A DNA stretch of 64,000 bases from NCBI GenBank assembly GCA_037447605.1, contig CM074815.1, positions 1,674,001 through 1,738,000 of the forward strand. The letters are read 5' to 3'. The notes under the pieces are model-generated. The model was not told where the DNA came from, did not search any database, and was given only the letters and a program-made list of their open reading frames with translations. Source of the stretch: Zygnema circumcarinatum SAG 698-1b. Lineage: Eukaryota; Plantae; Zygnematophyceae. This document shows positions 1,230 through 57,948 of the stretch, piece by piece. Position 1 is the first letter of the stretch. The number at the start of each line of letters is the position of its first letter. Both the position numbers and the translations under genes were made by a program.

Positions 1230-2441
1230 TTTGTACCTGGCCACGTGGCGCCACCGGACAGCGGATTGTGGGTCCCACAATGCAGAATGGCCCGCAGTTA
1301 GAGCTGACGTTGACCCCCCTTGTAGGGGATACCGTACGGCAGCGAGTCGGTCCTTACTTGCCGTACGGACTGTCCTTGTGTCCAAGGCCCGGCAGTTGCA
1401 CATCCACGCCCCGGGGGGGGCCACGTGCCGAAGCCTGGTTCTCCGGCTGCAGTACCGTACGGCAAGAGTTCGGCCGAGGAACAGCGGGCCAGGCCAGGCC
1501 AGCGGCTGGCCAACTTGTACAATGATCATGGCCAGCTGGCCGACAAAACCGGCTGCCTGCCGGACAGGCAGAAAATCTGATGGCGAGGCTCTGGACGGCT
1601 GCCGGCCGGGAGGGTCGACCGCCGCCTGCTTCCTGATTCGACCGACATGTGCCGACTCTGGTGCCGGACAGGCATCGCGACCAGTGCTCCGACCGCAGCG
1701 GAGGGAGGGAGGGAGGAAGACGGCCAGACGGCCGGGCGGCTGGCTGGCCGGCTGGCCGGCGGGCGCTGGTGGTGGTCAGCCATGGCCACCCGTCAAAATG
1801 TTGTACGACATTTAATACTTAAATAGGCAATAACAGACGTAGGCTACTTGTGACCAGTTCTTCGTGGTTCCCAAGGCTAATTTTGTCCGTGTACACTTGA
1901 TGGTCTTGCCACTGTGAGATCAATGCTATTTCTTCCCCTTGAGGTCCCTTGAGGGATGTTTCAAAGCGAGCAAAGATGCAACAACAACAACACTACACAC
2001 ACACACACACAATACTGCACTGCACGCACAAGCCGGCGAAGCCCAGCGTTCACCACATTGGCACAAAAGTGAAATGAATGCTCAGCGGCCGGCCGGCCGC
2101 GCAAACCCGCGCCGACAGAGCCGGCCGGCCACATTCTCAGTTTGTAACGGCCATTCTCGCCGGCCGGCCCGTCTCCTGACCGTCCGGCCGCCCCACCTTG
2201 TCGTCACTCTACAAGACAAAGCTCCCCGCCCGCAAGCCAGCTATCCATATGTACGGACTACCTGCTCGTAGAGCCGTCCGGCCCGTCCGCCGTCGGCCGG
2301 CTGCTCGCTCGTCCAGCCGTACGGTGGATCTCGCAAGTGGATCCGCCAGTCCACTGTAGGACCGCGGCCCTGCCAGCTGGCCGTGCCGCCCGCCGGGCCC
2401 AACCTTTCGCGTTTGCCGGCGGTCCAGTCGCATGTCCGTAC
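1230..2441. promoter_or_regulatory. GC-rich intergenic island with GTAC/CCGTACGG and G-box clusters upstream of the coiled-coil gene
   Basis: CCGTACGG at 1332, 1361, 1455, 2317; GTACGGAC/GTCCGTAC at 1363, 2251, 2434; CACGTG at 1130, 1242, 1422; many GGCCGGCC palindromes; AT-richer core about 1810-2080. Regulatory role is inferred. Confidence 0.5.
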
Positions 2442-3128
2442 AGATTGATCCAGCGCGGGAATTTGTTGACCATCGCTGCTACTTCCAGTGGCGGGCACGT
2501 GTCCTCCGCAGGGCTCGGCCGACAATTTTTGGCAGGACCAACGGACGGCCGCCGCCTACTAGTTTCCCTTGCCGTCCAGCAGGAACTTTTTACATTGACC
2601 GTAGTTTCTGGGCAGCTTGGTCATCACGTATGTCGCCTCTCCCCGTCTCCGGCTTCCAGTCCCGCTCCAACCATGCGCCTAAGTCCGCCCTCGACGCGCC
2701 ACGTGGCATCTTTTTGGCCGTTACTGCTGCCCAAAAAACGTTTTTCTGCCCGCAATCGCCAGCCGCTTCGTATTTTACAGTTGTCGTTTTCGTCCGACGG
2801 ACAGGACGGATTATTCAGCCAATGGCGTGCTCCGCGAGTGCCGGCTCGAACGTGCCACCAACGGTCCTCATTGGCCCGTTGGCCGAGCTCTGATTGGCCA
2901 CCGACACGGAGCGGTCCCTTCGTCCTTTGCGAGCGGTACTCGAGGCGTCGGCCAATGGGACGCTCCGGAGAAACGTGTTGAAAGAACGTGGCTGCTCACC
3001 ATTGGCCGGATTCCAGCCCCCATTTGCGAGGGGAGGCGAAGCGGACGAGGCGAGCCCCGCCCTTGAAGGCCGGGCCGCCCCCAATTGGCAGCTCCCGGGA
3101 CCGCCATTGCAGGGCCGCCAGCGGCCGA

Positions 3129-3158
3129 CCCTAACCCTAACGCTGATCCTAACCCTAA
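3129..3158 (+). promoter_or_regulatory. Telo-box-like (CCCTAA)n in the 5' leader of the coiled-coil gene
   Basis: ccctaaccctaa..cctaaccctaa lies upstream of the first ATG (3184); the ORF track start at 3085 is a TTG. Confidence 0.4.
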
Positions 3159-3183
3159 TCCTGCAGCGGTTCAGACGAGCAGC

Positions 3184-5073
3184 ATGCGGGACGGAGGTCA
3201 TGGGAGGGAGCTCATGGGGGAGAGAGAGGATGAGGAGGAGGAAGACGACGAGGAGGAGGAGATAGAGATGCCGCAGGGCTGCACCATGGGAATGCGCCGC
3301 CCGCGCGTCCGGCCCTTCGGATCCGCATGCATGGGTCCCGCTGCTGCCGCTATGGGCAGGGGGAGCAAGCAGGGAGCCTATGCTCGCTTCCGTCATGCGG
3401 CCGACAGGTGCCTGCTCCCCCTCCCGCTCTTTCTCGATCTCTCCCTTTCCTTCTCTCTTCCCCTCTCCCCGTCGTGTGTCTTGCAAGAATCTGTTTTTTT
3501 TATCACTGACGCGATCTGGAGTTCACCCTGCAGCCTGGCGAAGTTGAAGGAGGAGAGCGAGAAGGAGACGGCGGATCTGAAAGAGCGGCTGCGCGGAGCA
3601 GAGGAGGTGGCGGAAAAGGAGAGGCGGCGCGCAGATACGGCGGAAGGAAAGCAGCGGCAGCTGGAGGACCACCTCGCTCTGCAGAGGAGGGAGCTCACGC
3701 GCTTGCTGTTGGAGAGGAAGGCGGAAAGGAGGGAGCTTAGAGCGGCGAGACAAGCCGAGTCGGAGAGGGTAAAGAAGGAGGGTGAAAAAGGGAGAGGCGC
3801 TTTGAAAGGGACAGGGGACAATGGGAAGGGGGAGGGAAAAGAAAGTGTGCAGGGATTTGATGCTGTGCAGAAAAGTGGAGAGAAGGAAGAGAAAAAAGAG
3901 GGAGGGGGAGGTGCGAAAGGCCTCCCTCCCCTTGTGGTAGGGAGGGGGGTGAGTAACTCAACTGGTGCTGGGAAGGAGCTCCAAGGAGCTCAATTGAAAA
4001 TTGAGAACCTTGTTCGGGAGGTAGCGGAGAAAGAAGCGGTTATGAAAGAGATGAAGAGAGAGCTGGAGAGGTGGAGGGAAGGGGCGGTTGGAAAAGAGGC
4101 TGAAAAAGGGTCGGAAGCGGAGGCACAGGGAGTCCCCGGCAATGTAGCAAAAGCGAAAGTGGACGTGGAGGAAGCAGTTTCAGCCAAGAATTCTCCTGCG
4201 GAAAGCGCAGCTCAGATGGAGAAGATAGCAGGCATGGCGGAGGAGATTGGGAGGCTTCGATCGCAGGTGGTAACGAAGGAGGATGCCGTCACACGCGTGG
4301 CCGAAAAGAACAGGGAACTGACTCGAGTGTTGAACAAAACTGAGGAGCATAGAAAGGAGCTGGAACGGCAGCTCAAGCGGATGAAGGACGACATTGCTCG
4401 GTTGGTGGATGATCTTGTTCAACTTGCCAAGGGTGAGAGACCTCTCACAGATCTCGACCTTCCCGCAGCCTCTCCAACCTCACCGGGAGTTGTGGGATAC
4501 CGCCAGAAGCTGACAGGTATCGTGTTGAAGCTGAGGGAGGAATTGAAGGCACTTGGTGAGGAGAAGGAGGGGGAGTTGCGGCAGTTAGGTATAGTTCTGC
4601 AAAGCAAGGAGGCGGCTATTTCATGGCTGGTGAAGGAGGTAGATGGGCTGAAGGAGTCTTTGGGACAGAGGGAGAGAGCGAAGGAGGAGGAAGCTGGTGG
4701 GGTGGCAGCCATGGCTGAGAAGGTAGCGGAAGCGACAAGGCTGAGAGATGAGGCAGTGAAGAAAAGGGATGCACTCGAAGGGGAGCTTCGAGCCGCGAGG
4801 AGTGCGCTCTCTGAGGAGATTAGAAGGAAGAGTGAGAGTGAGAGAGAGGGAGAGGGTGTGGGTGTGGTGAGGGCGAAGCAAACGTGCAACGAATGCAGCA
4901 GAAAGAGAGAGAAGCCTAAACCGAAAGCTGACGACGTGGGAGAGTTTGGCGCGGGAGTGAAAGCATCTCGAGGCGAAGTGGAGGGACTGGGAACAGAGCT
5001 GACCAAGGCTGAAACGGAGCTGGAAAATGGGGCCAAGAAGAAAGGGCTGCTAAGTGATATTGGAAACTTCTGA
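3184..5073 (+). CDS. Uncharacterised acidic/basic coiled-coil protein (about 587 aa)
   Basis: Long ORF with an E/K/R-rich heptad-like sequence (LAKLKEESEKETADLKERLRGAEE...). First ATG is 3184 (alternative 3214). Probable 126-nt in-frame GT-AG intron 3408-3533 (CT tract, CACTGAC branch site, CCCTGCAG acceptor). No family recognised. Confidence 0.75.
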   Translation: MRDGGHGRELMGEREDEEEEDDEEEEIEMPQGCTMGMRRPRVRPFGSACMGPAAAAMGRGSKQGAYARFRHAADRCLLPLPLFLDLSLSFSLPLSPSCVLQESVFFITDAIWSSPCSLAKLKEESEKETADLKERLRGAEEVAEKERRRADTAEGKQRQLEDHLALQRRELTRLLLERKAERRELRAARQAESERVKKEGEKGRGALKGTGDNGKGEGKESVQGFDAVQKSGEKEEKKEGGGGAKGLPPLVVGRGVSNSTGAGKELQGAQLKIENLVREVAEKEAVMKEMKRELERWREGAVGKEAEKGSEAEAQGVPGNVAKAKVDVEEAVSAKNSPAESAAQMEKIAGMAEEIGRLRSQVVTKEDAVTRVAEKNRELTRVLNKTEEHRKELERQLKRMKDDIARLVDDLVQLAKGERPLTDLDLPAASPTSPGVVGYRQKLTGIVLKLREELKALGEEKEGELRQLGIVLQSKEAAISWLVKEVDGLKESLGQRERAKEEEAGGVAAMAEKVAEATRLRDEAVKKRDALEGELRAARSALSEEIRRKSESEREGEGVGVVRAKQTCNECSRKREKPKPKADDVGEFGAGVKASRGEVEGLGTELTKAETELENGAKKKGLLSDIGNF

Positions 5074-6900: not shown

Positions 6901-7544
6901 GGCTGTTAGGGAAGGACGAGAGGAAGGGGTAAGGAGTGAAGGTGGATTTGTGGCGGGAGAGCGAGGGAGGTAGACGGGGGGGGCAGGGGGAGAGATAGAA
7001 AACAATGGAATGAATGAAAATACGAATTATTATTGTCTCTCGCTTTCCTTTTTAGAAAGGATGAGGGTTAAGGAAATTGGCTTCTGACAACGGCGCTGAT
7101 TTCCGAGAGTAGAAGCTGCACTAAAATCCACCTTCTTTTTCCTTCGGTTTTCCTCCTTTTTTTATTCTCAAGAATTTCTCTGCTTTTCAGGAAATCCCCG
7201 GCAGCCAATCCTGCGAGCTTGACGTTCAAGTCTCGTCGCTGCGCCGTACTCCTTCCAAACTCCCATTCGTCTAATTCAACTTAAGAATGAATCTCTCCCT
7301 TCCCCCCTCACCGGGAAAGAAAAAGAATCCATCTCAGCATCCGCCATGGCCGCCACGTGTCGAAGCACCGCACGCTACTCCCTCGACGACGTCACGGCAA
7401 ATTACACTAACTGCAAATGGCGACACGTGGCATTAAAGAGAGCGCGAGAGGGGCAGAGAGGGGAGCTGGAGAGCCGCGCGCATTCATTCGGAGCCAGCCG
7501 GCGCGATGCAATGCAATGCTTTCGGGGCTTTGCGGGTGCGGCCG

Positions 7545-7827
7545 CCTCTCTCCTCTCTCCTCTATCCTCTCTCCTCTCTCCCCTCTCCTCTCTCCTCTCT
7601 CTCTCTCTCTCTACTCTCGCCTCTCTCCTCTCTCCTCTCTCCTCTCTCCTCTCTCCTCTCTCCTCTCTCCTCTCTCTCTCCTCTCTCCTCTCTCCTCTCT
7701 CCTCTCTCCTCTCTCCTCTCTCCTCTCTCCTCTCTCCTCTCTCCTCTCTCCTATATCCTCTCTCCTCTCTCCTCTCTCCTGTCTCTTCTCTCCTTTCTCC
7801 TCTCCCCTCTCTCCTCTCTCCTCTCTC
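7545..7827. repeat. (TCTCCTC)n polypyrimidine heptamer microsatellite, about 280 bp
   Basis: Nearly pure C/T tract with 7-bp period; it produces the spurious SLLSPL/ERREERG ORFs. Confidence 0.95.
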
Positions 7828-7983
7828 GGCGGGGTGGGGTCGGCCGGTCACGGCTGGCGAGTAGCGGCGCGAACGAGGGAGGGCGGGCGGGGGAGGCGAC
7901 GGCGGTTTGGCGCGCAGCGGGGCGGGGGCGTTCACACGCGCAACCGCAGGGCTAGTTGCGTCCGCGGCAACGGGCAACGGCGA

Positions 7984-8079
7984 TTCCAGACCGCGTTTAC
8001 ACATACAACCACAGTTCCAGTTCCGACAACACGGAAACAGCAGTTCCAGTCCGCGTTCACAATACAAGCGCAGTTCCAG
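7984..8079 (+). repeat. Imperfect 36-bp direct repeat (period 60) rich in CAGTTCCAG
   Basis: ttccagaccgcgtttacacatacaaccacagttccag (7984) vs ttccagtccgcgttcacaatacaagcgcagttccag (8044). Confidence 0.7.
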
Positions 8080-9640
8080 AGCGTGTGAACATGTGGCGTC
8101 TTCGCATGCGTGTGCCATGCCGTGCCATGCCATGCCAGGCCATACACTCACACGGCGGCGACGCAAAGGCAAAGCGGGGACCCGATGGGAGCGGTCACGA
8201 AGGTCATTCATGGAATTATGTGCACAGAAAAGTGGAGGCGGCAAGTGACCATGCATGCATGCAGGCAGGCAGGCAGGCCCTAACGATGCGCCAACTCCAA
8301 AGGCAGCCTAAACTCTATGAACCTCAAACGCTAAAATCCCGAAGTGAAAGATCGGCGATGCGCGCACATGCCCTCACGCTAATGTTTGCTGCACGGGCGG
8401 TGAGCGGGCAGGCAGGATGGATGGATGGACCGCGTGAATGTTGCGATGTGGTCATGGAGGTGCGATATGAGGTTATGTGAAGTATTTTTCACGTCATTCA
8501 TGCGGCGATGGGCTTGAAAGAGGGAATGAATCGAGTTGATCTTACGGTGGTGGCGTCATGAAAAGCTACAAAGTCGTCGTTTTCACTCACCCGCAGGTTG
8601 AAGGGGATTGCAGGCGACTTCGAGGGCAGAGATCATGGCTTACACCCAACCCCCATGTCGCATGCAGTACGGTTCACTCACGTGCGGTCAACTGTTCCAC
8701 TACCATTCATTCAGCCTTCGTTACCTATGAGTTCAGTTAAGATATCAAGAGCCCACCTTCGATTGACACTTTCAAGGGCGCACAAGGTATGCTTTATTCC
8801 TTTTTTTTGTTTTTTTTGTTTTCTGATCGTGAGATCAATGCCACGTCCCGCTCATTGTTTCATTTCTTTCCATGCAGAATCCACGCATATCACGATGAAG
8901 CAGTCTGCGTAAAAAATAACTCTCTCGTATACAATCTGTCAATTTCAATCCCCCTTTTGCTTCATTGAAAATGCAGCAACCACCGTGCATACATGACATC
9001 TGAAGCTCTGCCGCCAAAGACTGCCACCTCTCGTATTGGCAACAGCAGCGCACTGCCCACGCCCTTGACTGGTTCTCGACCGATCAATGCATCGGAGACG
9101 GACTTGTCCATGCATGGACCAAGCCAAACTTGCCAGGCCAACAGACCATCCAAGGGCTGATCTCACAGCGACATCATGACCCTGCCAGGATATCATTTTT
9201 CAGATCAATGTCCATGGTAGAGCACACTCGTGAAGGAAACCAGTCTCCACAATTTATTTGCTCTGTAAAAATTGAAGGAATAACCTTGTGTCTCTGCATC
9301 AACGTCACACCTAAACAGCCACCTCGTTATCGATCACGCTTTTTTTCTTGCTTTTGTGTTTTCTATTTTAAAAATAATGATTGTTAGTCACTCCCTGCAG
9401 ACCCTGTCGACCCTGCCGACCCTACCTGAAAAACAACCCTAATCCCCATACGAATTTTGAGTTGGAGCTTATTTTTTATCAGGTCCAAGTGAAAAACGTC
9501 CTCATCAATCGACTAAATAAATAAATTCTGCGCGATCAAGGGTGAGAGATCGACGTATGGAGCAGCCCAAATCTGTTGTCAGTTGCAATCGCTCCCCCCT
9601 TTAGCCATTACGGCTCGCACCATCATCACGCCTACCACAC

Positions 9641-16479: not shown

Positions 16480-17289
16480 ACTTCCACTGTAAAGAGACTA
16501 AATGCGGCTTCCTTCAGCCTCTCCTCCCTTCCCGAAGCGCCCTGAGAGTCCAACAAGGGTGCCACGTGTCCAGCTCAGAGTCCCCCTTTTCCCGCACACG
16601 CATTCTCCTTGCCTCTGCGCTGTCAATGCGGCACCTCCCGCTCCCCGCCTCCCTCTCTCTGCCGCGCGAGAGCCCTTCCAAGAGCGCCTGCAGCCAGCCG
16701 CCGAGCGAGCTGCGAGAGAGAGGAGAGAGCTGGAACAGGCAGGCAGGCGGGCGGGAAGAGTAGGCCCCCTTCCGGGCCGTTAAGCGCCAGAGCCGGCCCG
16801 GCCTCGCGCCCTTCGAATCCCGTCGACCGGCTCCGTTTCCGTTACAGTCCCATCTGCCAGCGTGTGCCCCTCCACACTGCGACTGTCAGAAACACCAGTG
16901 TGAACACCCTTGCGGAGTTTCTTTTAGCGCGATCCGCCGTGTGAACGGGTCCAGGAGGGTACTCCCGGCGCGCTGATAGACAGTTGACCGCGGTCAGCGT
17001 CCGTGGCAGCGGCGGCGGCGGGAATGGCAATAGAGATGACCGACGGGACGGGACGACAGGAGTCAGTGGCAGAGACAGAGGCAGACGCGCGCGGTGGGGG
17101 GGGGGAGGGCGGCGGACGGGGCGGGGCGGGCGGGCTTGTCGCCGCGCTGAGCTGGCCGCTGGACCGCGCCAAACCGAGGGCCGCCGGGCGGCATCAAACG
17201 GCTCGATTCGCGGCTACATGATCCGCAGCTGGACGGTATCCGTTCAGTTCATTTTCAACGCTCACCGTTCAATTAGGACCGTTGCGAAT

Positions 17290-17540
17290 TGATATGAATA
17301 ATTTGGGACTGTACGGCAGCCAGTAACGGTACAGTACAGTACAGTACTGTACAGTACAGTACGAGGATCGGACCGTACCATACGGCTTGAAGTACGGATG
17401 AGCGTACCCTGCACGTGGCAGCGTACGGAGGCGAAGGTACAATAGGGGAAGGTTCGCTGGGGACTTCTTCGCGTCTGCCACGTGGCACACAGAGCCATTC
17501 CGCACGTGCGGTCCGAAGCCAGGCGCGTCGCCACGTGGCC
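17290..17540. promoter_or_regulatory. GTAC array plus G-boxes in the divergent RLK/GR promoter
   Basis: 13 GTAC within 17311-17440, seven of them consecutive at 5-bp phase (17329-17363); CACGTG near 17413, 17479, 17503, 17532. Confidence 0.6.
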
Positions 17541-17663
17541 TGCCGCAAGCGCGCGGAGGCGCGGACGGCGAGGGGGACGCGAGGGAGAGAGTGGGAGAGG
17601 GAGAGAGGAAGAGAGTGGGAGAGGGAGAGAGGGAGAGGGGAAGCGAGATAGTTCCCGGCGGCC

Positions 17664-21568
<3,905 letters not shown>

Positions 21569-22632
21569 AGTCTGGTTTTCTTAGGTCGAACGCAACGTCC
21601 GACCGTCCTGGACAGCGTGCTATTTTTCTCCCAAACTTGAAAACATTTCTTATTTCTGTCCTTCGCTTTGCAGCCTTCGTTAAGCGGAGCGGCTTGATAC
21701 GGAATGCTGCAGAAACGGGCTTGCTTTGGCTGCTCCAATTGTGTGCCAAATACTCAAAAAGGAAATCCGCAGAAGAGGCGTGACTGCACAGTGCAAGCTG
21801 TACATAATGTGCTCAGTTCCCTTTGGCCATATTAATAACAGGAAGCCCTGTCTACATTGATGTACTACGAGCCTTATTGCGAATTTCTATCCATGTAGGC
21901 TGCTTTGAGCAACTATTCTTTTAAATTTAAACTCCTTGAGGTAGAAGGAATGCTAGTTTAAGTAGTTGAAAGAATATGCAGGTACGGGGATGAATTGGAT
22001 TTGATTTTACGCTGGCAATGCCGTCAGATGTACTCGGACAAAAAGATGAAATGAAGGACCAAGGTGAACCGGTGACAAATGACCTAGAAACAAAACAAAG
22101 TTTCTCTTTGCAAGTCTGTATGCAAGTCACTCTTCCTAGCCATGAATGACTTCACACACTCTGGAAAATGAGTTTCCAATATGCGTCCTCCATCGTTGGG
22201 ATAATGAGGGAGAGCTGCACACCATCTAAAACGTTTAAAACACTTTCAAAAGAAGGACGTGGTGTCGTAGCGACATACCCACCATCGTCTATGGCCGCCA
22301 TTGCTACAGGAAGCTGCAAGGCTGCATACGCACCATCCACAAGTGCATACATGCATGCATGGCATGGCGAAGTGGTCAACACGTGCCAATTAGGTGTATT
22401 GTCAGTGAGCTCAACATCATCATTTAATGAATGTAATAGTGCCGGTCCGCACATATCCGTGTCCCACTCGCCTGCTTCTTTGTACGCATAAACACAAAAT
22501 AGGTAGAATGCCAATGAATCCTAACGATCAATCAGTTCATGTTCTGCTGCTGCTCTCTCTCCGCCCTAACTGACTGCAATCACATGGAACCGTGGGCTTG
22601 CTGCCTACAATACAAACAACCAACGGCTTTTC

Positions 22633-23430
22633 TGATATGAATAATTACAAAAAAACGACCTCCCTCCCCGCCGTGCCATCCATCCATCCAGCCGTCCATC
22701 CATGGGCCCGCAAGTGCGTAGCCAAACAGAGTCCCTGTGACTGAGGCAGGCGAAACAAACAGACCGACCGACTCGCGGATGGGTCCGGGGACCAACGGAC
22801 GGTCGAGATCCACGATCCAAGATCCACCTCTTGCGTTAGACAGGAGTCCGTACAGCCATTCTCCTCGCACGTACCTCCGTACAGTACCGTACACATAGAC
22901 TGGTACGGAACTTTGGCATTTGGGGTCGAACCATTCCAACAGCATGAGCCAATCAGGGGCTGCCACGTTGCCTCCGCCTGCAACGCCCAACAAACGACAA
23001 ACTTGGTGAGGGAAAAAATTACCAAAACCTTTCAAAACCTGCCCGGGTCAAGCTCTGGACACAAGGGAATGACCATACGGACGTACGGACGGGTGCGGGT
23101 GGCCGTACGGCGGAGTGGGCTTGTTCAACGGGAACAGAAAAGCGGCTCCACCGTACGAACACTAAACGACAACCAAACAACAGGACGAAACCCGTCATCA
23201 GGTCGTCCACTGATCGTACCAATCAGTACTGTACAGTATCCGACATGTCCGTACAATATCAAATCTGACCGATCCGACGGCGCAAAAGCGGCGATGCAGC
23301 GCCGCGCTGGCGACAGAGCCGGAAGACGACAGCTCCTGCCGACCAGGGCACGGCGACACATGCGCAATTAAGGCTGGCAGGCCGCATGTGCGTGCACTAA
23401 ATCCCGCACGTGCCGACAATGTCACGTGGC
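22633..23430. promoter_or_regulatory. GTAC-rich GC island between convergent GR and orphan 3' ends
   Basis: 13 GTAC in 22850-23254, CCGTACGG at 23103, GTCCGTAC at 22846 and 23247, CACGTG near 23407 and 23423; no protein gene assigned. Confidence 0.45.
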
Positions 23431-26930: not shown

Positions 26931-27151
26931 AGACGGGAGCGGCTCCGCGCCTTGAAGGGCGCCATGTGCCAGCCAGAGGGCGCGCCGCCCGGCATCAATC
27001 CGCTCGTGCGGGGGAAGGGCCCAACGGATTTTGAAACTGGGACGGAACGGGGTTTTTGACACGTGTGAGGAACGGAGACGGAACTCTCGTGCATGTGGCG
27101 GGGAAGTGGGAGGCGGAAGGATGGGTGGGAGGGCAGCAGGAGCAAGCAGCC

Positions 27152-37404: not shown

Positions 37405-37559
37405 GGCTCCCCCTCGCAGCCTCTCTCTCTCTCTCCCTCACTATCGCTCTCTTTCCCTCGCCCTCCCGCTCCCCCTCCCGCCCGGCCTCCTGCAGCCGCC
37501 GCGAGTCGCGCCTGGCGGCCTTCGGGGGGGTTCAGGCCCTTCAGGGCAGCCATGGCAGC

Positions 37560-37800
37560 CCGCCGTACACATTGGTACTGTACGAAAATTCCGACTAGAC
37601 TGGAACTGGAACTGGGAACTGGAACTGGATTTGCCACGGGACTGGAACTGGAAATAGGGCCGGAACTGGAACTGCAACTGACACTGGAGTGAGACTAAAA
37701 CTGGAACTGGTAAATATTCTACATGTGAAACTTGATTTTTCAGAAAATCCAGTCTGACATACTGTACGGACAACTCAAGGGAATAATGTACTGTACTGTA
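37560..37800. promoter_or_regulatory. Divergent RBM39/TON1 promoter island with GTAC sites and (ACTGGA)n tract
   Basis: GTAC at 37565, 37575, 37580, 37764, 37788, 37793; ACTGGA-type hexamers across 37599-37710. Confidence 0.55.
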
Positions 37801-38484
37801 GTTGACCAGTCGCGGGCAGGAATCGAGGTGGACCCTCGCAGAGGGTTGATCTCGGTGGATCCTCCTCCCCCAGTTGATCCGTTTGCTGTGCTGGAGGAGA
37901 TGGATGCCAGCCCTTGCCGACAGGTCTGCCCCCCTCCCTTCCTCCCTTCTCTCCGCCGATCTTTGCCGGAGCTGCCATGGCCACGTGCTCATCTGCTCAC
38001 TGGCCCACACCGTCTCACGGAGATTATCTCCATTTACATGCGCAATCGCGGTCTTGTTGAATGGGCTCAAGCCGTTTTTAGTTTTCAGTGCTCTCTGTGG
38101 CTGGCTTGCGGCCTGTTTCGAAGCTTCAAGAAGATTGATTGTGGTGTCAGACCGACTATTGCAGTGGGAGTCTTTTTTCTTCGAAACGTTAGAATCAGGC
38201 TCTTTTTTTGGAAAATCGATTTTCAAGAGCCTGGTCCATGTCCGGACTTACCTATCTTGAGAGCGTGAAATCGGTTCGCACAAGCCAAGAATTGGAGAAG
38301 GGCCGAAGTTTGGAATCTGAAACATTTTAGTTTGAATAGGGCGAATTCTCCTTGTGTTAGGTCAAATGTGGCGGGTGGAAGCGCCTAGTAGCGCGATAGT
38401 AGGTTAACTGCCCGCCGCGCTTGTTAACTGGCAGTTGGTAGACTCGCCTGGATTCATATTCTGCATTACTCTGTCATCAGAATT

Positions 38485-43262: not shown

Positions 43263-46200
43263 TCAGAAGTAGCTCGATTGATTTTGGAGCAGCTCCAACA
43301 GTGACAAAATCTTTGCAGCCACTGACTTGCAGTCAGCGGAGCCATGCTGCGCGAGCTCAATAAGAGCCCCCTGTGCCTTAGAGCCATACTCGAACTTGTA
43401 ATCGTTGATCTGAAAAAGCTTTTCCAGCATCCACAGTGCCTTCGCCTTAGATCGATCGGTCCCATCTGATAGCTGCTGTACCACTCTCTCAAAGCCCCTC
43501 GCCTCGTGTATCACACGTACTCCGTCCTCCCACCTCCCTTGGTCAGGCAGCAACGTACTGATCGCTACAAGAGCTGCTTCTGCAGTAAGGGGGTCCTTAT
43601 CCGCCATGACTGACACTAAAGGGGCCACCGCATCCGCTTCAAGGAGGCAAAAAGTTTTCTCTACGTCGCATACCCCTCCGTGCACTCTGCAGTAGGTGGG
43701 AGGGGGAGGGGAGAAGCAGCAGTGCCCCCTGACCTTGCTCGGCTGACTCAGTCGGTCGCTGTTCTGCGAGAGGTGGCCCAAGCACTGCGCTGCATTCCGT
43801 TTGGAGGCAGATGTTCCCGTCACGAGGACATTCACTAAGAGAGGAATGGCTCCAAGATCGGCAACTACCTGCTGCAGCTTCACACTGCATACGTTCAACA
43901 AAGGAGAAGCACATCAGTGAGATATAGTTGAAAGGGGAAGGAAAGCAGGTCGCACACGAACCAGCAGGCAGTGAGGCACAGTTATGAACTACCTTCAGAT
44001 GAGACATCATAAAGAAACACACTCAATTGAAGTTTGGCATTAAGGTTCTACTTGGACAAAGGCGGCAAATGAGCAGGTCCTTAGATGAGAAACTCAGCAC
44101 GCTCGTGTTGAGAGGAGACGTACAACCACGGAAAAGAAGTTGGAGATACTCACTTGGTGGACAATGTGAAACGTTCGAGTGCTGCAGTGGCTGCCTCAAG
44201 CATCGCATCTCTTGTCGCCCCGGAGGCTGTTCTAACATTCAGCATGCGAATAATGAGAGGAACAGCATCAATCTGCAATACACAAACACATCCATGCAAA
44301 CAAACGTCAAACTGCAGGTACATTCATTCACACCTGAAAGTAACACCGTTGTGTATGACCACATAAACTAAAAAACAGCTCTGCCCTGTCCAAAAACCCT
44401 ACTAAAAACCAGGACCGAAATCTCCAATAGCCCTCTGCGCTGCAGCCGACCCACTTCCCATTCGACCCAACTTCTCATACACGATGATAAGAGATGACTG
44501 ACCCACTTTCCATTCGACCCAACTTTTCATACGAGATAATAAGAGATGACTGACCCACTTTCCATTCGACCCAACTTCTCATACGAGATGATAAGAGATG
44601 ACTGACCCACTTTCCATTCGACCCAACTTCTCATACGAGATGATAAGAGATGACTGACCCACTTTCCATTCGACCCAACTTCTCATACGAGATGATAAGA
44701 GATGACTGACCCACTTTCCATTCGACCCAACTTCTCATACGACCCACTTTCCATTCGACCCAACTTCTCCTACGAGATGATAAGAGATGACTGACCCACT
44801 TTCCATTCGACCCAACTTCTCATACGAGATGATAAGAGATGACTCTCATACGAGATGATAAGAGATGACTGACCCACTTTCCATTCGACCCAACTTCTCA
44901 TACGAGATGATAAGAGATGACTGACCCACTTTCCATTCGACCCAACTTCTCATACGAGATGATAAGAGATGACTGACCCACTTTCCATTCGACCCAACTT
45001 CTCATACGAGATGATAAGAGATGACTGACCCACTTTCCATTCGACCCAACTTCTCATACGAGATGATAAGAGATGACTGACCCACTTTCCATTCGACCCA
45101 ACTTCTCATACGAGATGATAAGAGATGACTGACCCACTTTCCATTCGACCCAACTTCTCATACGAGATGATAAGAGATGACTGACCCACTTTCCATTCGA
45201 CCCAACTTCTCATACGAGATGATAAGAGATGACTGACCCACTTTCCATTCGACCCAACTTCTCATACGAGATGATAAGAGATGACTGACCCACTTTCCAT
45301 TCGACCCAACTTCTCATACGAGATGATAAGAGATGAGTGGTGCTTCTCCTTACCTGAACCAAGACTGTGGTAACGCGCGTGTCTGTTAGCGGCAGCCCTG
45401 CAATGGTCCCGGCCGCCGCCGTCCTCTCCTCGTGGCTCTCCCTCTCCCCGAGCAGCCCTTTGAGAGAGCGCAGACCGAGCCCCTGCAGCTCCATGAGGTT
45501 GTCCGCTACTTCCTTTCCCATCCCGTCGGAGCAGAGCACTCGCAGAAGCTGTGCGGCACTCAGACGCAGACCTCGAGTCTGCAGGGGACCTGCAGGCCCA
45601 ATCAGCTATAGACTCGGACCACAACATAGGGCAGAATTTGACAAGAAATTACGCTAACAACATAAGAGAGAGAGATATGAAGGGATAGGAAGAAAGATAG
45701 GGGAAGAAGAAGAAGAAGATAAAGATAGGGGGGAGATATAAAGTCGCTGACAGAGCACCCTAAGCAGGGTAAGTTGGTACAGGGGGTGGAATTTGGGATA
45801 GGCTAATTTTGATTGAATTGATCATGCAAGCACAGCAGAATGGACGGAGGAGTAGGATATGAACTTCTATAGTGACATTAACCAAAATTATTGATCATGG
45901 GACTCTGCAGACGTACATGACTGGAACTAGAGGGGAAACGAGAGAGGAAATTGATTAATAAAGGAAGGTAGAATCCTGCCAGGATGGTTACATGCTGTGT
46001 AGTAGGTTAAAAGGACATTGAAATTTAGAGAGAACTACGAATTGGCAGAGAGAAGCCCCCTCCAGGACTGGATGCGAAGCCATAATGCTCAGACCTAATA
46101 ATGTGCATCAGAATAAGGTGTCTAAAAACCCTAAAAACCCTAAAGACACGGCACGTTTTTGTGATGCAGATAACACAATAACAGACATGCACGCTACCAG

Positions 46201-49785: not shown

Positions 49786-50149
49786 GGCTGCAAGCCCCCG
49801 TTCCCTCCTGCTTTTCCAAAACACCAAGCCATTCGCAAAAGTGAGAGATCAATTATAGACATATTCACATCTTCGTGTCCTTAGCGCTCCCTGCTGTTAA
49901 CCCTAACCGCCCACCTTCAGTGGAGGCTTCACTAAAACAGAGCCCTATCTCAGATCCGCAACGCAACCGACTGCACTGCAAACCCGAGCCGCAAATCAAA
50001 CCAAGACAAACCCGTCCCTCCCTTAAAACCCATCATCTTCATATGCTTTAGGGTTTACCTTTCCCTTCAAACCTGGCTCCTCTTTCTGTGCGCCCAAACG
50101 CAGCCAAACTCCCTTCTCCGAGCTTTATACCCTCCCCCTACCGTCTGCC

Positions 50150-50790
50150 CGCCACGTGTCAGGCTATCATGCAGCGAGGACCGCCTCCCCTCTTCTCCCC
50201 TTTTCTCCCGCCATGGCTTCCCCTGCTCTCTCAAGACCACGTGGCGCCCAGAAGCGCCACGCCACGTGGCGGCGCCCCATTTGCCCAATGGCGGGCAGTT
50301 GCCCGGTTTGACTCCGCACATGCGGCTGGTCGTCCCGCCGTTCCCGCGCCTTCGGAGGGCCGGGTACACTAACCGGACTGCCAGTACGCCCCTCCAGTGG
50401 ACGCTTTTGGACGCTCTACGGACGCCCGGAAGCTCGCTGGGGGACGGTCGTTTCGAATACCGTGTTTGGCCGACTTTTAATGACGGCCGTTGGGCGGGCG
50501 GCGCAGCCGCGCAGGACCCGCCCGTCCCTCGTACGAACGTACGGACGAACGGACGCGGGCGGAATACCAGGGGACGACAGGAGGGCCCACATTTGTAGAT
50601 ATTTCCGCCTTGGGCAGCTTGGATCCGCGCTCCAGAGGGCCGCCGGAAAAACAATTTAACCTCCCGAAAAGGGTGGCTGCCGGAACGGCGGTTGACAAGG
50701 GCGGCAGACCGTACGGACGGTGGACCGTATGAAACGTACGGATATTCGGGCAGTTGGGGTCACTTTGGGTGTACGAACGACGTACGGTTT
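50150..50790. promoter_or_regulatory. GC island upstream of the U-box gene with GTAC/GTACGGAC sites and G-boxes
   Basis: 8 GTAC in 50364-50785, GTACGGAC at 50539 and 50711, CACGTG near 50154, 50239, 50263; telo-box tttagggttta at 50047. Confidence 0.55.
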
Positions 50791-50896
50791 AAGGAGCTTG
50801 GCGGGGTTCTATGAGGCGTTGTTCCGTTGTGGGTGACGGTAAGCGTGGAACCTAGAAACCACTAAATACCTAGGCGGAAGGGGCACAGCGTGACGG

Positions 50897-51190
50897 ATGT
50901 CACGGGGACAGAGGCACGATGGAAGTAGCTTGGAAGTGACCTTTGCAGATGAGCTGGGGGCCGGGGGCGGTGACCGGGGGACCGGGGGCGGTGACTTGGG
51001 GACCGGGCCTGAGGGCCAGGACGTTGCAGTAGGTGGCCCGGGGGCGGGTCGCAGAGGGGGGGATCTGGGGCGGGTCCCCCAGTGGAGGCAGAAAGGGGAG
51101 CCTGGAGTATTCAACAGAGGAGGGGTGGGATACATGCGTGCATGCTGCTGCGTGCTTGCTGGCTTTGCATATGGACCAGAATGTGTTTGA
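50897..51190 (+). CDS. Possible first exon of an orphan Gly-rich protein
   Basis: ATG-initiated ORF MSRGQRHDGSSLEVTFADELGAGGG... lies 1112 bp from the U-box ATG, matching the spacing of the other divergent pairs; no homology recognised and downstream exons not resolved. Confidence 0.25.
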   Translation: MSRGQRHDGSSLEVTFADELGAGGGDRGTGGGDLGTGPEGQDVAVGGPGAGRRGGDLGRVPQWRQKGEPGVFNRGGVGYMRACCCVLAGFAYGPECV

Positions 51191-52534: not shown

Positions 52535-55500
52535 TCAACGTCGGTTGGGACGCGGCTTATAGCGAAACTCTGCCAACAGAGCGATATGATCGGAGGACCA
52601 TTCTGGTGAAGGTAGGGCTGTGTCCTTCCGAAGACTTTCCTCATCCAGTAGTTCCAAAAGCGCTTCAACAGACAGAGAATCAGCTGTAGCCACAGAAAAC
52701 GAGAAGTGGAAGTGGCAGATGAATAGAGACTCACAAAAGAAGTTCCAACTTGATTATAAGATGAGCAATACAATCCCATTCGAGCAATATGGCAACACGT
52801 GTGTAGACATGTGCGGGACTGCAACGCAATCTATCTGCCAAAATAACACAAGGTTGATCCACGGAGGGAGGAAACCAGATGTACCTGTATAGAATATGTA
52901 ATCCAAAGTTCCAAGAAAATCCCGAGTGCAATTGGTAAACAGGGGTTCGCTGCTGGTGGCATCCATACGCCGCCTTTGACGCTCTGCAGCGGGCCCTGAG
53001 GCTGAATTCAAGCGGTTCAGAGAAGCATAGGCACTAACCTGCGCATGCAACACCACCACAAGAAAACTCCTTTACTTTCCCAAATTTCATGCCCCGTTAA
53101 TATCTTCAGGCATTGATAGTAACGTGATGTTTTCCTTGCTATCCATCAAACATATGATTGCCCGAAGGTGAAAGGACAACAGGTCAATGTATTTTCACTT
53201 AAAATTCTTTCAAAAGGGTATCAAAGGATATCAGTAGAGAACCTAATTCCGATTAAGGCATACGAAATGGATGCTTACTTCTCTTTATGGCATTTACCCT
53301 TCATTCCTTGAATGCATCCTCACAATTTCTGCCCTGTATGCTCTAGTTACATTTGAATACAGCGTACGTAAAATTCACCCCCCTCGCTGTATTCAGCGAC
53401 GGAAACTCAAAACAGTCGTTCATGTTAAGTAGAATACACCAAAAACACGAATCAAATGCCACCAAATCACGAGATTATGCTAATGAATTGGATTACCAGA
53501 ACATAAAGTGGAGGAGATGGAGGACCCACCAAGGGCAACTGATGGCAGAGCTTACTGAAGGGGCGTAGAATCCCCAACGGGTCAGTGGCCAACTCCGGGT
53601 GAGCCGGATCAACCCGTCCGGTCGCTAACAAGTTGTGCGGCGCACTGCAGCCCTCTAACTACACACCTTTAGAAAGAAAAATTTGGCAGTACAGGAAAAT
53701 CTCGAGACTATACTGGACATATCCAACACCGAGAGTTACATTCAAGCTGTCCACATAGGGAATTATGCATAGCTCCAAACTAGTCAGTGACTTTTTCAGA
53801 GAAGATGATCGGCCCCCACCAGCTCACCTGCCTGGCACACTGTTGAAATCTCCTGCAACAAGCATAGGAATATCGGCACTTGCGGCTATCTTCTCCAAAC
53901 CCTTCAACAGTGTGTGCACTTGCCAAAGCTTCACATCCTTCAGCTCTGTATTGGCGTGAATATGGGTATTAGCCTGCAGTTTGCCACCAGAAAACATGAG
54001 AGCCCAGAAAATATCTCAAAGGAACATACCTCACTGCTTTCTTTTATTCTGATTGTACAATGGGCGAAGTAATATCCGGGAACTCACTACACATAACAGC
54101 TGCCGTTTTCCATTCCCGTTGGGGTCCGGATCAGCTGCATCGCGTGCTTCCAGCACCACAATTAGTGCTACGTTGTCCTGTTGAGCAGAGCGAAGGTCAG
54201 TGTCAGCCACCATGGGGATAAAAAAGGGCATTTGGCAGTATTTCAGTTCACATTTTCATCATCCATCACTGCTTTAACCAGTGGCAATAGAAAAAACAAC
54301 AGGATTGAAGAATGGCACTCTCCGTTTTTCTGCTTCTCGCAGATAAGGAAGAAGTACTAATATAGCTGCTACTCCTATTTAGCTGGCTACTTCGTTGTCC
54401 TAGATACAAGCGTAACTCTCTGAGCACTTAACGAAGGAATGCACACATTGGTCAAGACTGTCAGATGGTGAACTCTTAAACTTGCACACAGGAAAGTGGC
54501 ATACCTTGAGCAGACGGTTAAGAGCTGCCTTCTTTGACGTGGCCGGCACAAGTGCCTCTGAGAGGGAAAGAGCTGCTTTGTTGAACTCCACCTGGTGGAG
54601 CAAAGCAGAGCTGTCCGCTACATTACTTTGCGAACAGATGATGTGGATGCGCAGAAAATAAATTAGAACGATAACTCTTAGTTTGAACTGTGAATGCCTC
54701 GACCAAGTTTACGCTTGAACGTAAATACATACCTCATACTTCTTCACCAAAGAAAAGCGATCCCGACGGAAGAATGTTGCACATCCATCAATGGCATAAG
54801 CAGTTCCCGTGTACACCTGGGAAAGACCGATCACATTTCACACAATGAGAAGACCGTGGTCGTGAACTTTGAACAAGTGGCGTACTTTCAGGAAGCACAC
54901 GCCAAAGAGTCAATGGACATGACTCAAGTAATTGATGATATCTTTGAGAGGAACACTCCCGATTGTATGTAAGCCGATGAACAGGCAGCATCTACTTGAA
55001 ACGAAATTATATGGGGTCCCATCATCCCATTAAATACCAACCTCTGCAGTCTTCTTCTTGTACACTGCAGCATATCCATGCTTCTCCAACTCTGGCGCAA
55101 AAAACTCCTCGAAGTGGTCACTTTGTACCTGTAGTGACCAGAATGCCATCATCAGTTCATTTCAATAGGCAAGCACTAATGACTACTCGTTAAGACTGCT
55201 TCGACTTTTCAGGTCATCTCTCCTACTCGTGTAATGGATACCACATTAAACACAGACCATAAACCTTAGTAAGGTCTCGCCTTTTTAAACCGAGCGAGAT
55301 TGTATGTTGTACGAAGTCAACAAATTCCGCAGAAGAAGAAACACGGAATGAACAAGGCTCATACTACGAAAAAATTGGCTATCAGCCACCAAATACTACA
55401 AATTAGAAAGGACAGTGAAGCCTAGAAATACAGGCATGTAGCATCTACATTGAGCAGTATGTACCTCTTGGAGGCATAATATATCTGCTCGATAGCCGAC

Positions 55501-57336
55501 CAACTCCCGCAACAGGTTTTGACGCCGATAGGCCCAAGAAAGCGCCCATGGTGGGCAGTAGGCATACATCTCACTTGTAGCATACAAGTCTGCCAGAACA
55601 TTATAGGACAGCACTGTAAAAGTCCCTCCAGAAGCTCTGTCTGCTTCTACAGCATTGCCGTCTGAAGGTCCAAAAGGAATAAGTCGTCTTGGAGTAGGAG
55701 AAGGAGCTGGAATGACCCGAGAAGTAAGTAAAGTGCTAGGTGGTGCGACTGCATTCCCTGTAGAGGAGTCTATTGGGGTACATTCCAGCTTCAAAACATG
55801 GCCCACGTCATCTGCAGTTGGGGTATATGTCTTGCCCCGCCCAACCTCATACCAGGATTCCCCTATGGACTGTGGCTGGCCATCTGCTCCATTAGGCGCC
55901 CTATTGGCAATATACCCAGACCCGCCGTTGCTCAGACCACTGAGAGAATTGGCCCCGCTCCCCTGCAACAGACCTCCTGTAGTGCTTCCTGCTCCACTAC
56001 CAAATCTACCAAAGAGTTCGTCATCCTCCCCTCCAACTTCCCTCCCACCATTTGCCATGCCGCGTGTATGCATAGCCTTGTGATGTCGCCATGCAGCAGC
56101 AAAGCATTGTGGAGAGCAGTGGAAGCTTTTGGCAGGTGGCAGCTTTGCCTTGACACAACCCAGACACTGCAAAGTGGCTGGCTCGGTGGCATGAACACTG
56201 CAGACAGCAGCCCGCTTATCATTCTGGACTCGAAACCTGTACATCCAACAGTAGCAATCAGCAGCTTGCAACGTATTCAAGTGAAAGACAGACTTATAAA
56301 TAAAGCCAACTTTCATAAACTGTCGTAGGCTTAAACCTAATGAGACTAGCATTACACTACTACTACTAGCAGTACTCCCAAGATATCCCCTGGCAGCTGT
56401 TACTTCCAGTAATATTCCACATACCAAATAACATCTAAAGGCATGACAAGGGGCATGAGCGTCTAAATCAACGATGACAGAACAGAGCTGGCCTAAAAAC
56501 CCTAAAAACAGTAAAAAAAAGACATAAGTCACAAGATGAATGAAAGAAATGAGCTCCTCTCCAGCCTTCCTATCAGACATGCAGGAACCTAGGCATCTAC
56601 GAATTGTTTATTCTCACCTAGCGATTCGATACTTAACCTGATCAACTTTAGGCCTAATGCAGAATGATGAACCGAGAAGCTTACACACAATAAAGCACGA
56701 GCAAACCTCACTTTCTGCTATTATACCCAGCTTCTGGTATACTTTGCAAAGTCAGCCTCAACTATTTCCAAGGCCGAGTAAGTGAATTGGAAATCACAGG
56801 CACATACAGTTTCAGAATCAAGAGACAGCTCGCCTTTGGACTCAAACAATCTCACTAAAGTTCCTCAGGAAGTGTAATAAAAGTCACCAACAGAATCGTC
56901 AAAGGGCAATCGACCTTGTTCCAGCTTCGAATAACACAGTCTTCACTCCCTCAAGCAAAACCCAAAGCTGACTCGTTTCTGACAATCAAATACACTCAAA
57001 GACATGCCATTACGGCACACAATGCCATAGGCATAAATTACTGCTGCAGCATAATCCTGAGTCGAGCTTCACACAAGTTGCAAGGTTATCATTGGCACCA
57101 ACGAGCAGTGCCACATAGAGAACCTCGCATGCAATTGTCATACAAAGCCGCTTTTAGGGTTTGAATGAGGGACTGCACCATCGGCAGCGTAGGTAGTATC
57201 CATCTATAGGATTGGTCTCTGGGATGTCATCAGTCGTGATGGTCGAGTCCGGCTTGCGCAGGAGCACATAGGGGGACAGCTCGCAGCCGGCGATGGGGAT
57301 GTCCGACGGCAGATGCACACGCAGCACGCCGAGCAT
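52535..57336 (-). CDS. CCR4: CCR4 deadenylase (plant CCR4a/b type, EEP nuclease; about 613 aa, 10 exons)
   Basis: Exons 57336-57179, 56236-55465, 55128-55042, 54816-54733, 54591-54505, 54177-54088, 53973-53828, 53644-53530, 53038-52885, 52683-52535. MLGVLRVHLPSDIPIAGCELSPYV, SYNVLADLYA, ILCLQEVQSDHF, AGDFNS, TLDYIFY, WSSDHIALLAEF. Confidence 0.96.
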
Positions 57337-57934
57337 GTCTGTCACAATGGCAGGCCTTCGCGGCCCAGCCTGCAGGAGCCCTCAATCCCTAAACCACCCC
57401 CCTCAGGAGGATCCTCCATCAGCATCCGCCAGCGCCACCTCTCCCACCGCGTCTTGCCGTCGTCTCTGATTTTCCTCTGTCTCCTGTCTTCCTCGGATGA
57501 TGTCGCTGCCCCTGCAGCTGCTTCTTTCTGCTCCACCCTGCTCCCTGCTTGTCCTGTACAGCAACCCTGTATGCTCTGCGCTACCGCAACCTAGTAATCT
57601 CCACAAGACAAGAGCTCCGCGACACACACACACGAGCGGTGCAGGAGAGAGCAGCAGCAAAAGTGACAAAGATTGGTCCTTTGCCTTTCGTTCAAAAGCT
57701 TCGAACCAAGCTTCGAGCGAAGGCAATTCGAAATGCAGTATTTCAATTAGGGACGCTAGAACCATCGCCTGCGGACAGAGAAGACGCCTACGTATCCTTT
57801 CCAAGGACGCTTTCTCTGTCTGCATGAGGACCGAATGAGATTAGAGACAGTGGGTACTTTTTGCGGACGGATGGTAAAGGCCCCCGTGGGACATCCTGGG
57901 GACGATATCCGGTGACTCAGGGGACGAGATTTGG

Positions 57935-57948
57935 GTACGGTACCGTAC
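57935..57948. promoter_or_regulatory. Perfect 14-bp palindrome GTACGGTACCGTAC in the CCR4/PEX14 divergent promoter
   Basis: Self-complementary, with three GTAC cores at 5-bp spacing. Confidence 0.55.

Follow-up and report, generated by a model that had tools for sequence, protein, structure and literature searches.

GTAC-containing words are strongly over-represented in eight GC-rich islands (A to H) of the window, i.e. the whole stretch of 64,000 nucleotides analysed here, and their flanks resemble those of SBP-box (SPL) binding sites. We propose, with a probability that we put at roughly one half, that these words are predicted SBP-box-type sites, clusters of which would form a promoter-distal, methylation-sensitive and very broadly used module.

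Distribution and enrichment of the motifs

Exact matching over the 64-kb window located GTACGGAC at positions 1363, 2251, 23083, 26923, 37764, 50539 and 50711, and GTCCGTAC, which is counted jointly with it, at 2434, 22846 and 23247, giving ten copies. The palindromic CCGTACGG occurs seven times (1332, 1361, 1455, 2317, 23103, 26921 and 50709). These are exactly the counts and positions of a preliminary description of this DNA, and the expectations given there for uniform composition (about two and one copies in 64 kb) are arithmetically correct as well. All 17 copies lie within the eight islands, which make up 17% of the window (about 11 kb). The GTAC core is present in all counted sites, and at least one CCGTAC is found in each of the eight islands, with 36 in total.

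The islands have a GC content of 0.55–0.71 and an observed/expected CpG ratio of 0.9–1.24, and the gene bodies are CpG-depleted (0.35–0.8). This is a composition of the CpG-island type, that is, GC-rich, CpG-undepleted and flanked by CpG-depleted gene bodies. Judging from the CpG ratio, the islands are probably unmethylated.

Two composition controls were applied. In 2000 dinucleotide-preserving shuffles of the island sequence, the expected numbers were 0.19 for GTACGGAC/GTCCGTAC (10 observed), 0.16 for CCGTACGG (7 observed), 3.5 for CCGTAC (36 observed) and 20 for GTAC (68 observed), and none of the shuffles reached the observed counts. Shuffling inside 500-bp blocks over the whole window, which is independent of the island definition, gave 0.54 expected for the ten copies of GTACGGAC/GTCCGTAC, 0.28 for the seven of CCGTACGG and 9.7 for the 44 CCGTAC of the whole window. 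Outside the islands, CCGTAC shows no enrichment (8 observed, 6.0 expected). The excess persists in island and block shuffles alike, which rules out a composition artefact.

Within the islands, CC-flanked GTAC cores are enriched 9-fold (29 observed, 3.25 expected) and unflanked cores 2-fold (39 observed, 16.7 expected), and CGTACG is found 15 times with 1.6 expected. The G-box CACGTGGC, previously noted as a companion of the GTAC clusters, indeed occurs in seven of the eight islands (21 copies, 0.5 expected). An unbiased k-mer ranking of the islands placed GA/CT tracts and the G-box first, directly followed by CCGTAC and GTACGGAC. Other over-represented 8-mers, such as CGACCCAA, were set aside because they derive from a 52-bp tandem array (44448–45336) that is unrelated to promoters.

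Organization of the islands

In every island with known gene direction (C, E, F and G), the GTAC cluster is distal and the G-box proximal to the gene. The usual order toward the gene is GTAC cluster, one or more G-boxes, GA/CT tract and start codon. The promoter context of six islands was judged from gene orientation and start-codon context; for the other two, D and E, it was judged from RNA contigs, and transcript starts are RNA-supported for island E.

Island A has two clusters. The first (1332–1463) contains three copies of CCGTACGG (1332, 1361 and 1455), one of them extended to CCGTACGGAC, together with GTACCGTAC at 1452, and has G-boxes at 1130, 1242 and 1422. The second (2250–2442) consists of TGTACGGAC (2250), CCGTACGG (2317) and GTCCGTACA (2434), followed by G-boxes at 2496 and 2700. 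A telo-box pair is present at 3124–3159, on the side of island A toward a plus-strand coiled-coil ORF. Island B is the motif-poorest, with a single weak site, CCGTACT at 7244–7250 (plus strand), in agreement with the caveat made earlier for the island at 7.0–8.3 kb; two G-boxes (7354 and 7424) lie beside it, as does a (CCTCTCT)41 tract (7545–7827). The cluster of island C (17310–17429) comprises TGTACGG, a (GTACA)7 microsatellite (17329–17362), CCGTACC, AGTACGG and CGTACGG, followed by four G-boxes (17412–17532), a GA tract (17575–17645) and the ATG of the glutathione reductase gene at 17665 (plus strand). An assembly gap (20640–20649) inside a (CTCTCC)n microsatellite (20589–20692) in an intron of this gene touches no motif site or count.

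Island F (37563–37796) lies between the RBM39 gene (minus strand) and a TON1-like gene (plus strand), and its two groups, CCGTACA with GTACTGTAC (37563–37584) and TGTACGGAC with GTACTGTAC (37763–37796), are separated by (ACTGGA)n; a G-box is found at 37982. The cluster of island G (50531–50787) is composed of CGTACGAACGTACGGAC, CCGTACGGAC and two copies of ACGTACGG. It occupies the promoter side of an ARM/U-box gene (minus strand), in a distal position relative to three G-boxes (50263, 50238 and 50153) and to a CT tract. Island H, from which the G-box is absent, has GGTACGGTACCGTACA at 57934–57949 with three GTAC cores at 5-bp spacing, about 280–295 bp upstream of the PEX14 ATG (58230, plus strand) and on the promoter side of a CCR4-like gene (minus strand). 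Nine CCGTAC sites are found in island D, two in H and the single weak one in B.

Transcripts at islands D and E

The cluster of island E (26888–26930), which comprises CGTACGG, a G-box (26910) and CCGTACGGAC, lies in an RNA-free, 700-bp bidirectional promoter (26437–27133) between two divergent, well-expressed transcripts. It is situated about 210–245 bp upstream of the transcript start of the plus-strand gene and about 450–490 bp upstream of that of the minus-strand gene.

Island D overlaps the highly expressed minus-strand transcript (22384–26436) of an orphan ORF of 590 residues (26253–24481). According to the RNA contigs, this transcript consists of exon 1 (26436–24458), a GT..AG intron of 1481 nt (24457–22977) that starts 23 nt past the stop codon, and a terminal exon 2 (22976–22384) with the poly(A) site. 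The left cluster of island D (22846–22908), with GTCCGTACA, CCGTACAGTACCGTACA and GGTACGG, lies in the terminal 3'UTR exon, as do the CCGTACA sites at 22877 and 22887. The right cluster (23082–23255), with ACGTACGGAC, CCGTACGG, CCGTACG, GTACTGTAC and GTCCGTACA, lies in the 3'UTR intron, followed by G-boxes at 23407 and 23423. The claim that every copy is intergenic and none is in an exon therefore had to be given up: GTCCGTAC at 22846 is in a 3'UTR exon, and a 3'UTR intron holds those at 23083, 23103 and 23247. Island D, motif-rich as it is, is not an intergenic promoter. A nested plus-strand promoter in this island was considered, but unspliced pre-mRNA would account just as well for the low-depth contigs in the intron.

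Similarity to the SBP-box consensus

The sites of the islands follow the consensus (G)T-C-CGTAC-(A/G), often as the palindrome CCGTACGG and sometimes with overlapping cores 5 bp apart. CCGTAC is followed by A or G at 31 of the 36 island sites, and at 17 of the 22 non-palindromic ones (p=0.006). The base 5' of CCGTAC in these 22 sites is T in 12 cases (background 21%) and never C. The eight CCGTAC outside the islands do not match the extended SBP consensus, the next base being T in five of them. Published SBP consensus sequences are CCGTAC(A/G) (PMC6508781) and TNCGTACAA (PMC10796333), and GTACGG is the core bound by SlSPL-CNR in DAP-seq and ChIP-seq, where 5mC in the core prevents binding, as it also does for SPLs of rice and maize (PMC13458263). 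The flanks of the island sites match all three of these words, so that the SBP-type identity suggested in the preliminary description is supported beyond the GTAC core itself. Streptophyte algae have one to four SPL genes, Zygnema circumcarinatum having three (PMC10796333); no SBP gene is found within the 64-kb window.

Proposed role of the GTAC clusters

The GTAC clusters may constitute the distal module of CpG-island-like promoters in this alga. One or more of its few SBP-domain proteins would bind the CpG-containing GTAC sites, presumably only while these are unmethylated, by analogy with angiosperm SPLs, and would provide, jointly with G-box factors, a broad promoter input rather than control a small copper or phase-change regulon. 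The genes beside the islands encode RBM39, TON1-like, CCR4-like and PEX14 proteins, fructosamine kinase, an LRR kinase, an ARM/U-box protein and glutathione reductase; such functionally unrelated neighbours, together with the occurrence of CCGTAC in every island, fit a putative broad use of the sites. The identity of the bound protein, the lack of methylation in the islands and a transcriptional effect are what we infer from these sequence features. On the other hand, island D with its nine CCGTAC sites lies outside any mapped promoter, islands B and H are poor in the motif, and the overlapping cores 5 bp apart and the (GTACA)7 repeat could partly reflect slippage instead of selection.

The preliminary description went on to a general promoter-marking or nucleosome-excluding factor, which is a speculative step. 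A further-reaching version, which we hold to be possible but doubtful, is that of a near-universal SBP reader of unmethylated promoter CpG islands, which would bind GTACGG clusters at most Pol II promoters and at intragenic promoter-like islands, and would contribute to keeping them open or unmethylated. As part of the same tentative reading, it could be a plant-lineage analogue of the vertebrate CpG-island factors, and the restricted functions of SBP proteins in copper response and phase change, known from Chlamydomonas and land plants, would have arisen by specialisation of a broad function or by departure from it.

Alternative explanations

The words could be real promoter elements that are bound by a different protein family, lineage-specific or unrelated, which reads GTAC or CGTACG, their resemblance to SBP sites being coincidental. 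The ACGT-like, palindromic features of ACGTACGG (four copies) and of the over-represented CGTACG would suit such a factor, as would the TACGGAC and ACGGAC variants without a leading G that share the same islands. We nevertheless consider it unlikely, since three independent flank preferences (CC before the core, A/G after it, and T but never C before CC) match the published SBP consensus. To our knowledge, no other plant transcription factor family has a GTACGG core, which also counts against it.

Secondly, the sites could be classical conditional SBP sites, belonging to a copper-response (CRR1/SPL7), stress or developmental regulon, their apparent ubiquity being due to the small size of the window. 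According to literature cited in PMC10796333, clustered GTAC cores are characteristic of CuREs and SPL7 targets, and one of the strong clusters belongs to a redox gene, that of glutathione reductase. In Arabidopsis, however, CCGTAC(A/G) is present in the 1 kb upstream of only 523 genes (PMC6508781), whereas all eight islands of the window contain CCGTAC. The functionally mixed set of genes beside the clusters also argues against a copper-responsive regulon. We regard this explanation as quite unlikely.

A by-product of sequence evolution in unmethylated CpG islands, for instance through GTACN slippage or retention of CpG-containing words, would require no protein-binding function at all. The (GTACA)7 repeat of island C and the 14 GTACNGTAC pairs do resemble slippage products, and the motif, which contains CpG, is found only where CpG is undepleted. 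CpG content is already covered by the dinucleotide shuffles, however, and a 9- to 50-fold excess remains; the majority of copies stand singly amid unrelated flanks, distributed over eight islands, and the flank preference matches that of a known protein consensus. We regard this origin as improbable. Finally, the islands hardly descend, as copies or remnants, from a single transposon or MITE family carrying GTAC arrays, an origin that is refuted for this window by the lack of homology when all eight islands were compared with one another by blastn (matches of at most 39 nt, E-values of 0.003 or worse, motif and low-complexity matches only), by a repeat search that found only microsatellites and no other inverted or direct repeats inside them, and by the mutually unrelated flanks of the GTAC sites.

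Searches with Rfam and ARAGORN found no non-coding RNA genes or tRNAs that could explain the islands, and Pfam scans of the ORFs in islands B and D and at the left end of A gave no match.

Relatives and literature

A CCR4 family tree groups the CCR4-like protein of the window with that of Mesotaenium, a zygnematophyte placement; identity to the best CCR4 homologue is no higher than 67%. Phylogenetic footprinting covered two orthologous liverwort loci, in both of which the motif is absent, and the nearest relative in Logan is an RNA contig, which includes no promoter. Searches of the hornwort, zygnematophyte and accessible-chromatin literature found no publication that describes GTAC as a promoter element used genome-wide; a string search for the 8-mers returned primers only, and two Zygnema papers made no mention of promoters or SBP.

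Comparison with known systems

SBP/SPL proteins are regulators of specific programmes, such as copper economy, phase change and fruit ripening. The window hints that in an alga close to the land plants they could act on most genes rather than on a few. If so, the ancestral SBP role would have to be redrawn, with the site as a standard promoter part in the sister lineage of land plants. CpG-island-like promoters would then be connected with a plant factor that is sensitive to methylation. An organism without a described cis-regulatory code would also gain a simple promoter grammar (GTAC cluster, G-box, GA/CT tract, ATG), from which minimal promoters for the transformation of zygnematophytes might be designed.

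With SBP-box/SPL elements elsewhere, the sites of the window share the GTAC core, the CC flank, A or G after the core, T two bases before CGTAC and a CpG inside the site, and their location in regions that look unmethylated from the CpG ratio fits the published 5mC sensitivity of SPLs. These putative sites differ in density and ubiquity (36 CCGTAC in 11 kb of islands, in every island and beside unrelated housekeeping-type genes, compared with the 523 Arabidopsis genes mentioned above) and in the frequency of the palindrome CCGTACGG and of cores 5 bp apart.

In Chlamydomonas, the GTAC core is all that is required of CuREs, the elements to which the SBP protein CRR1 binds and which mark a small copper-deficiency regulon. 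Clustered GTAC cores upstream of genes are common to these elements, to Arabidopsis SPL7 targets and to the window, where the presumed reader is likewise of the SBP type. In contrast to CuREs, the enrichment in the window concerns mostly the CC-flanked form, and the genes have no evident copper link. General promoter words are known from other organisms, namely the telo-box and site II in Arabidopsis and NRF1 and Sp1 sites in vertebrate CpG islands. As in these systems, a short CpG-containing or palindromic word occurs in GC-rich promoter islands of unrelated genes, with a second common element beside it, here the G-box. The word and the presumed protein family differ, and the generality of the word in the window is that of eight islands.

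Distribution and enrichment of GTAC words

Exact searching of the whole window recovered seven forward and three reverse-complement copies of the GTAC-containing 8-mer GTACGGAC and seven copies of the palindrome CCGTACGG, reproducing all positions listed in the preliminary description. The window has a GC content of 50.4%, and its 500-bp composition profile delimits eight GC-rich islands: A (1001–3250), B (7001–8500), C (16501–18250), D (22501–23750), E (26501–27500), F (36751–38000), G (50001–51000) and H (57251–58250). Their CpG observed/expected ratio is about 0.9–1.24, versus 0.35–0.8 in the gene bodies between them, a pattern that suggests gene-body CG methylation and unmethylated promoter islands in this alga. 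The islands make up 17% of the window, yet contain 17 of the 17 copies of the two 8-mers.

In 2000 dinucleotide-preserving shuffles per island, the observed count was never reached (0/2000) for any of four words, i.e. GTACGGAC on both strands (10 observed, shuffle mean 0.19), CCGTACGG (7 versus 0.16), CCGTAC (36 versus 3.5) and GTAC (68 versus 20). Because the island borders were drawn after inspection of the profile, the whole window was also shuffled within fixed 500-bp blocks, again giving fewer copies of GTACGGAC (0.54, observed 10), CCGTACGG (0.28, observed 7) and CCGTAC (9.7, observed 44). Elsewhere in the window CCGTAC is as frequent as expected (8 versus 6.0). The enrichment therefore survives correction for the GC and CpG content of the islands; it is real, and limited to the islands. 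It is about 9-fold for GTAC cores with a CC flank (29 versus 3.25) and 2-fold for those without (39 versus 16.7, seven of the 39 coming from one microsatellite). All 14 GTACNGTAC pairs, whose cores are spaced by 5 bp, are found in islands, six of them within a (GTACA)7 array at 17329–17362.

Genes and transcripts around the islands

Pfam scans of long ORFs gave a gene map with approximate spans, comprising an LRR-kinase (9.8–16.5 kb, minus strand), glutathione reductase (17.7–22.1 kb, plus), a 590-residue orphan (24.5–26.3 kb, minus), fructosamine kinase (from 27.1 kb, plus), RBM39 (31–37.5 kb, minus), a TON1-like protein (38–42 kb, plus), an ARM/U-box protein (43–50 kb, minus), a CCR4-like nuclease (52–56.6 kb, minus) and PEX14 (from 58.2 kb, plus). 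This map places five islands (C, E, F, G and H) between the 5' ends of genes. In the long CCR4-like ORF (55399–56580, minus), the first 120 or so residues do not align to homologues (66% query coverage), and its branch in the tree is long; the ORF probably includes read-through of an upstream intron or UTR, and its start codon position is therefore provisional.

RNA contigs from four runs, mapped over 22000–27900, leave an RNA-free gap in island E (26437–27133), bordered on the left by the end of the orphan transcript (26416–26436) and on the right by the start of exon 1 of the plus-strand gene (27134–27176). Relative to the two transcript starts, the three sites of this island (26888–26930) are thus located upstream by about 210–245 bp (plus gene) and about 450–490 bp (minus gene). 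The situation in island D, which has nine CCGTAC sites, is different. The minus-strand orphan transcript (ORF 26253–24481) is spliced from 24458 to 22976, with a 1481-nt intron that has GT..AG ends and starts 23 nt past the stop codon, and its poly(A) end is at 22384. The left cluster of island D is therefore in a 3'UTR exon and the right cluster in the 3'UTR intron, and this island is not intergenic. Intron depth is 7–30x, versus 280–724x in the exons (unstranded contigs), and the intron contigs gain depth to the right of about 23439, immediately beyond two G-boxes. Either a nested plus-strand start or a 5'-to-3' gradient of unspliced pre-mRNA would explain this step. The 3'UTR intron of this highly expressed gene holds a CpG island with a GTAC cluster, G-boxes and a purine tract, a promoter-like grammar.

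Judged by the shuffles and by the flanking bases described below, the motif system of the preliminary description is real, strongly non-random, of SBP-consensus type and situated in putative CpG-island-like promoters; the claim that its copies are exclusively intergenic fails on the RNA contigs.

The window has a single gap, 10 N at 20640–20649, within a (CTCTCC)n microsatellite (20589–20692). In the glutathione reductase gene this microsatellite is flanked by a GT donor site following 20578 and an AG acceptor site preceding 20838. The gap touches no motif site; the closest, an isolated GTACGG at 20849, belongs to a coding exon. A 52-bp tandem array (44448–45336; 17 copies, about 85% identity, sub-periods of 33, 78 and 85 bp) is presumably intronic within the ARM/U-box gene span, and is the source of the most over-represented 8-mers of the window, e.g. 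CGACCCAA and CCATTCGA.

Promoter words and their order

Island k-mers present in at least four islands were ranked against a second-order Markov model. GA/CT tracts come first, followed by the G-box CACGTGGC, the telo-box AACCCTAA, the start-codon context GCCATGGC and then CCGTAC/GTACGGAC (10 copies of GTACGGAC, 0.67 expected). The GTAC word thus belongs to a set of three or four main promoter words and does not stand alone; its enrichment is exceeded by that of the extended G-box (21 island copies versus about 0.5–0.58 expected, in seven of eight islands). The 22 G-box sites of the window (1130–50263) lie mostly between a GTAC cluster and a start codon.

In every island with known gene direction (C, E, F and G), the gene-ward order is GTAC cluster, G-box(es), GA/CT tract and an ATG in GCCATGG context. 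This order recurs in the right half of island A, and the left half read leftward, as well as island D read rightward, would match it. Where the start codon is credible, the clusters are about 0.2–0.6 kb away from it. With four secure cases, this common order is suggestive only.

Long GA/CT tracts precede most start codons (17575–17645, 26475–26512, 37088–37212, 50184–50209), and island B contains a 283-bp (CCTCTCT)41 microsatellite (7545–7827). The telomere-like AACCCTAA has 16 copies in the window (about 1 expected), of which most are located in gene bodies or introns and not in the CpG islands, such as a tandem pair at 46126/46135 (46126–46143); a four-unit CCCTAA run lies just upstream of a coiled-coil ORF (3124–3159), and there are 14 other sites. 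An imperfect (ACTGGA)n/AACTGG repeat of about 110 bp (37599–37710) separates two GTAC groups in the RBM39/TON1-like island.

Candidate readers of the clusters

All CCGTAC occurrences were oriented and their flanking bases tabulated. In islands the next base is G in 21, A in 10, C in 3 and T in 2 cases. When palindromes, which force a G at this position, are left out, A or G follows in 17 of 22 sites (binomial p=0.006 against island purine frequency); the preceding base of these sites is T in 12 of 22 (background 21%) and never C (0/22). The resulting island consensus is (G)T-C-CGTAC-(A/G). The eight non-island sites deviate from it, with T next in five.

We propose, with a probability of about one half, that the clusters are bound by SBP-domain proteins and that the bound clusters would serve many promoters as a distal module alongside G-box factors. 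The stronger proposal of the preliminary description, a general promoter-marking or nucleosome-excluding factor at the clusters, is a less likely possibility. That a non-SBP protein reads them is somewhat less probable; the SBP reading is more than name-matching, because of the flank preferences and because the SPLs tested from tomato, rice and maize did not bind GTACGG with methylated cytosines (PMC13458263). The CpG pattern implies that the sites are confined to DNA in which germline methylation would be absent. SPL gene numbers in streptophyte algae are low, at one to four (PMC10796333), which makes a broad role for one SPL plausible; a conditional copper or stress regulon is an unlikely reading of the clusters, and functionless sequence evolution an improbable one. 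Transposon origin can practically be dismissed, and copies of one repeat are ruled out for the window, since the 12-nt flanks show no relationship from one island GTAC core to another, all-against-all blastn of the islands gave only motif or low-complexity matches (at most 39 nt, E at least 0.003), and a repeat search inside the islands found microsatellites only.

Comparison with relatives and known SBP sites

Among homologues of the CCR4-like exon, a Mesotaenium sequence ranks first (67% identity), ahead of liverwort ones (64%), and a maximum-likelihood tree groups the protein with Mesotaenium (support 99/99); on this tree the source organism belongs to the zygnematophyte algae. In Marchantia paleacea and Calypogeia fissa, the orthologous CCR4 loci (30 and 26 kb) are free of GTACGGAC and CCGTACGG and have three and one CCGTAC, respectively, a density of 0.10 and 0.04 per kb; the density is 0.69 per kb over the window as a whole and 3.3 per kb inside the islands. 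Judged from these two liverwort loci, the GTAC feature is not a general property of the closest land plants covered. In the literature covered, which is incomplete, no description was found of a promoter element of GTAC type present genome-wide in zygnematophytes, hornworts or other streptophyte algae. In Arabidopsis, CCGTAC(A/G) occurs within 1 kb of the start in only 523 genes (PMC6508781).

SBP-domain sites have been described as TNCGTACAA with a GTAC core (PMC10796333) and as CCGTAC(A/G) (PMC6508781), and DAP-seq and ChIP-seq of tomato SlSPL-CNR gave the core GTACGG (PMC13458263). The island consensus agrees with all three descriptions.
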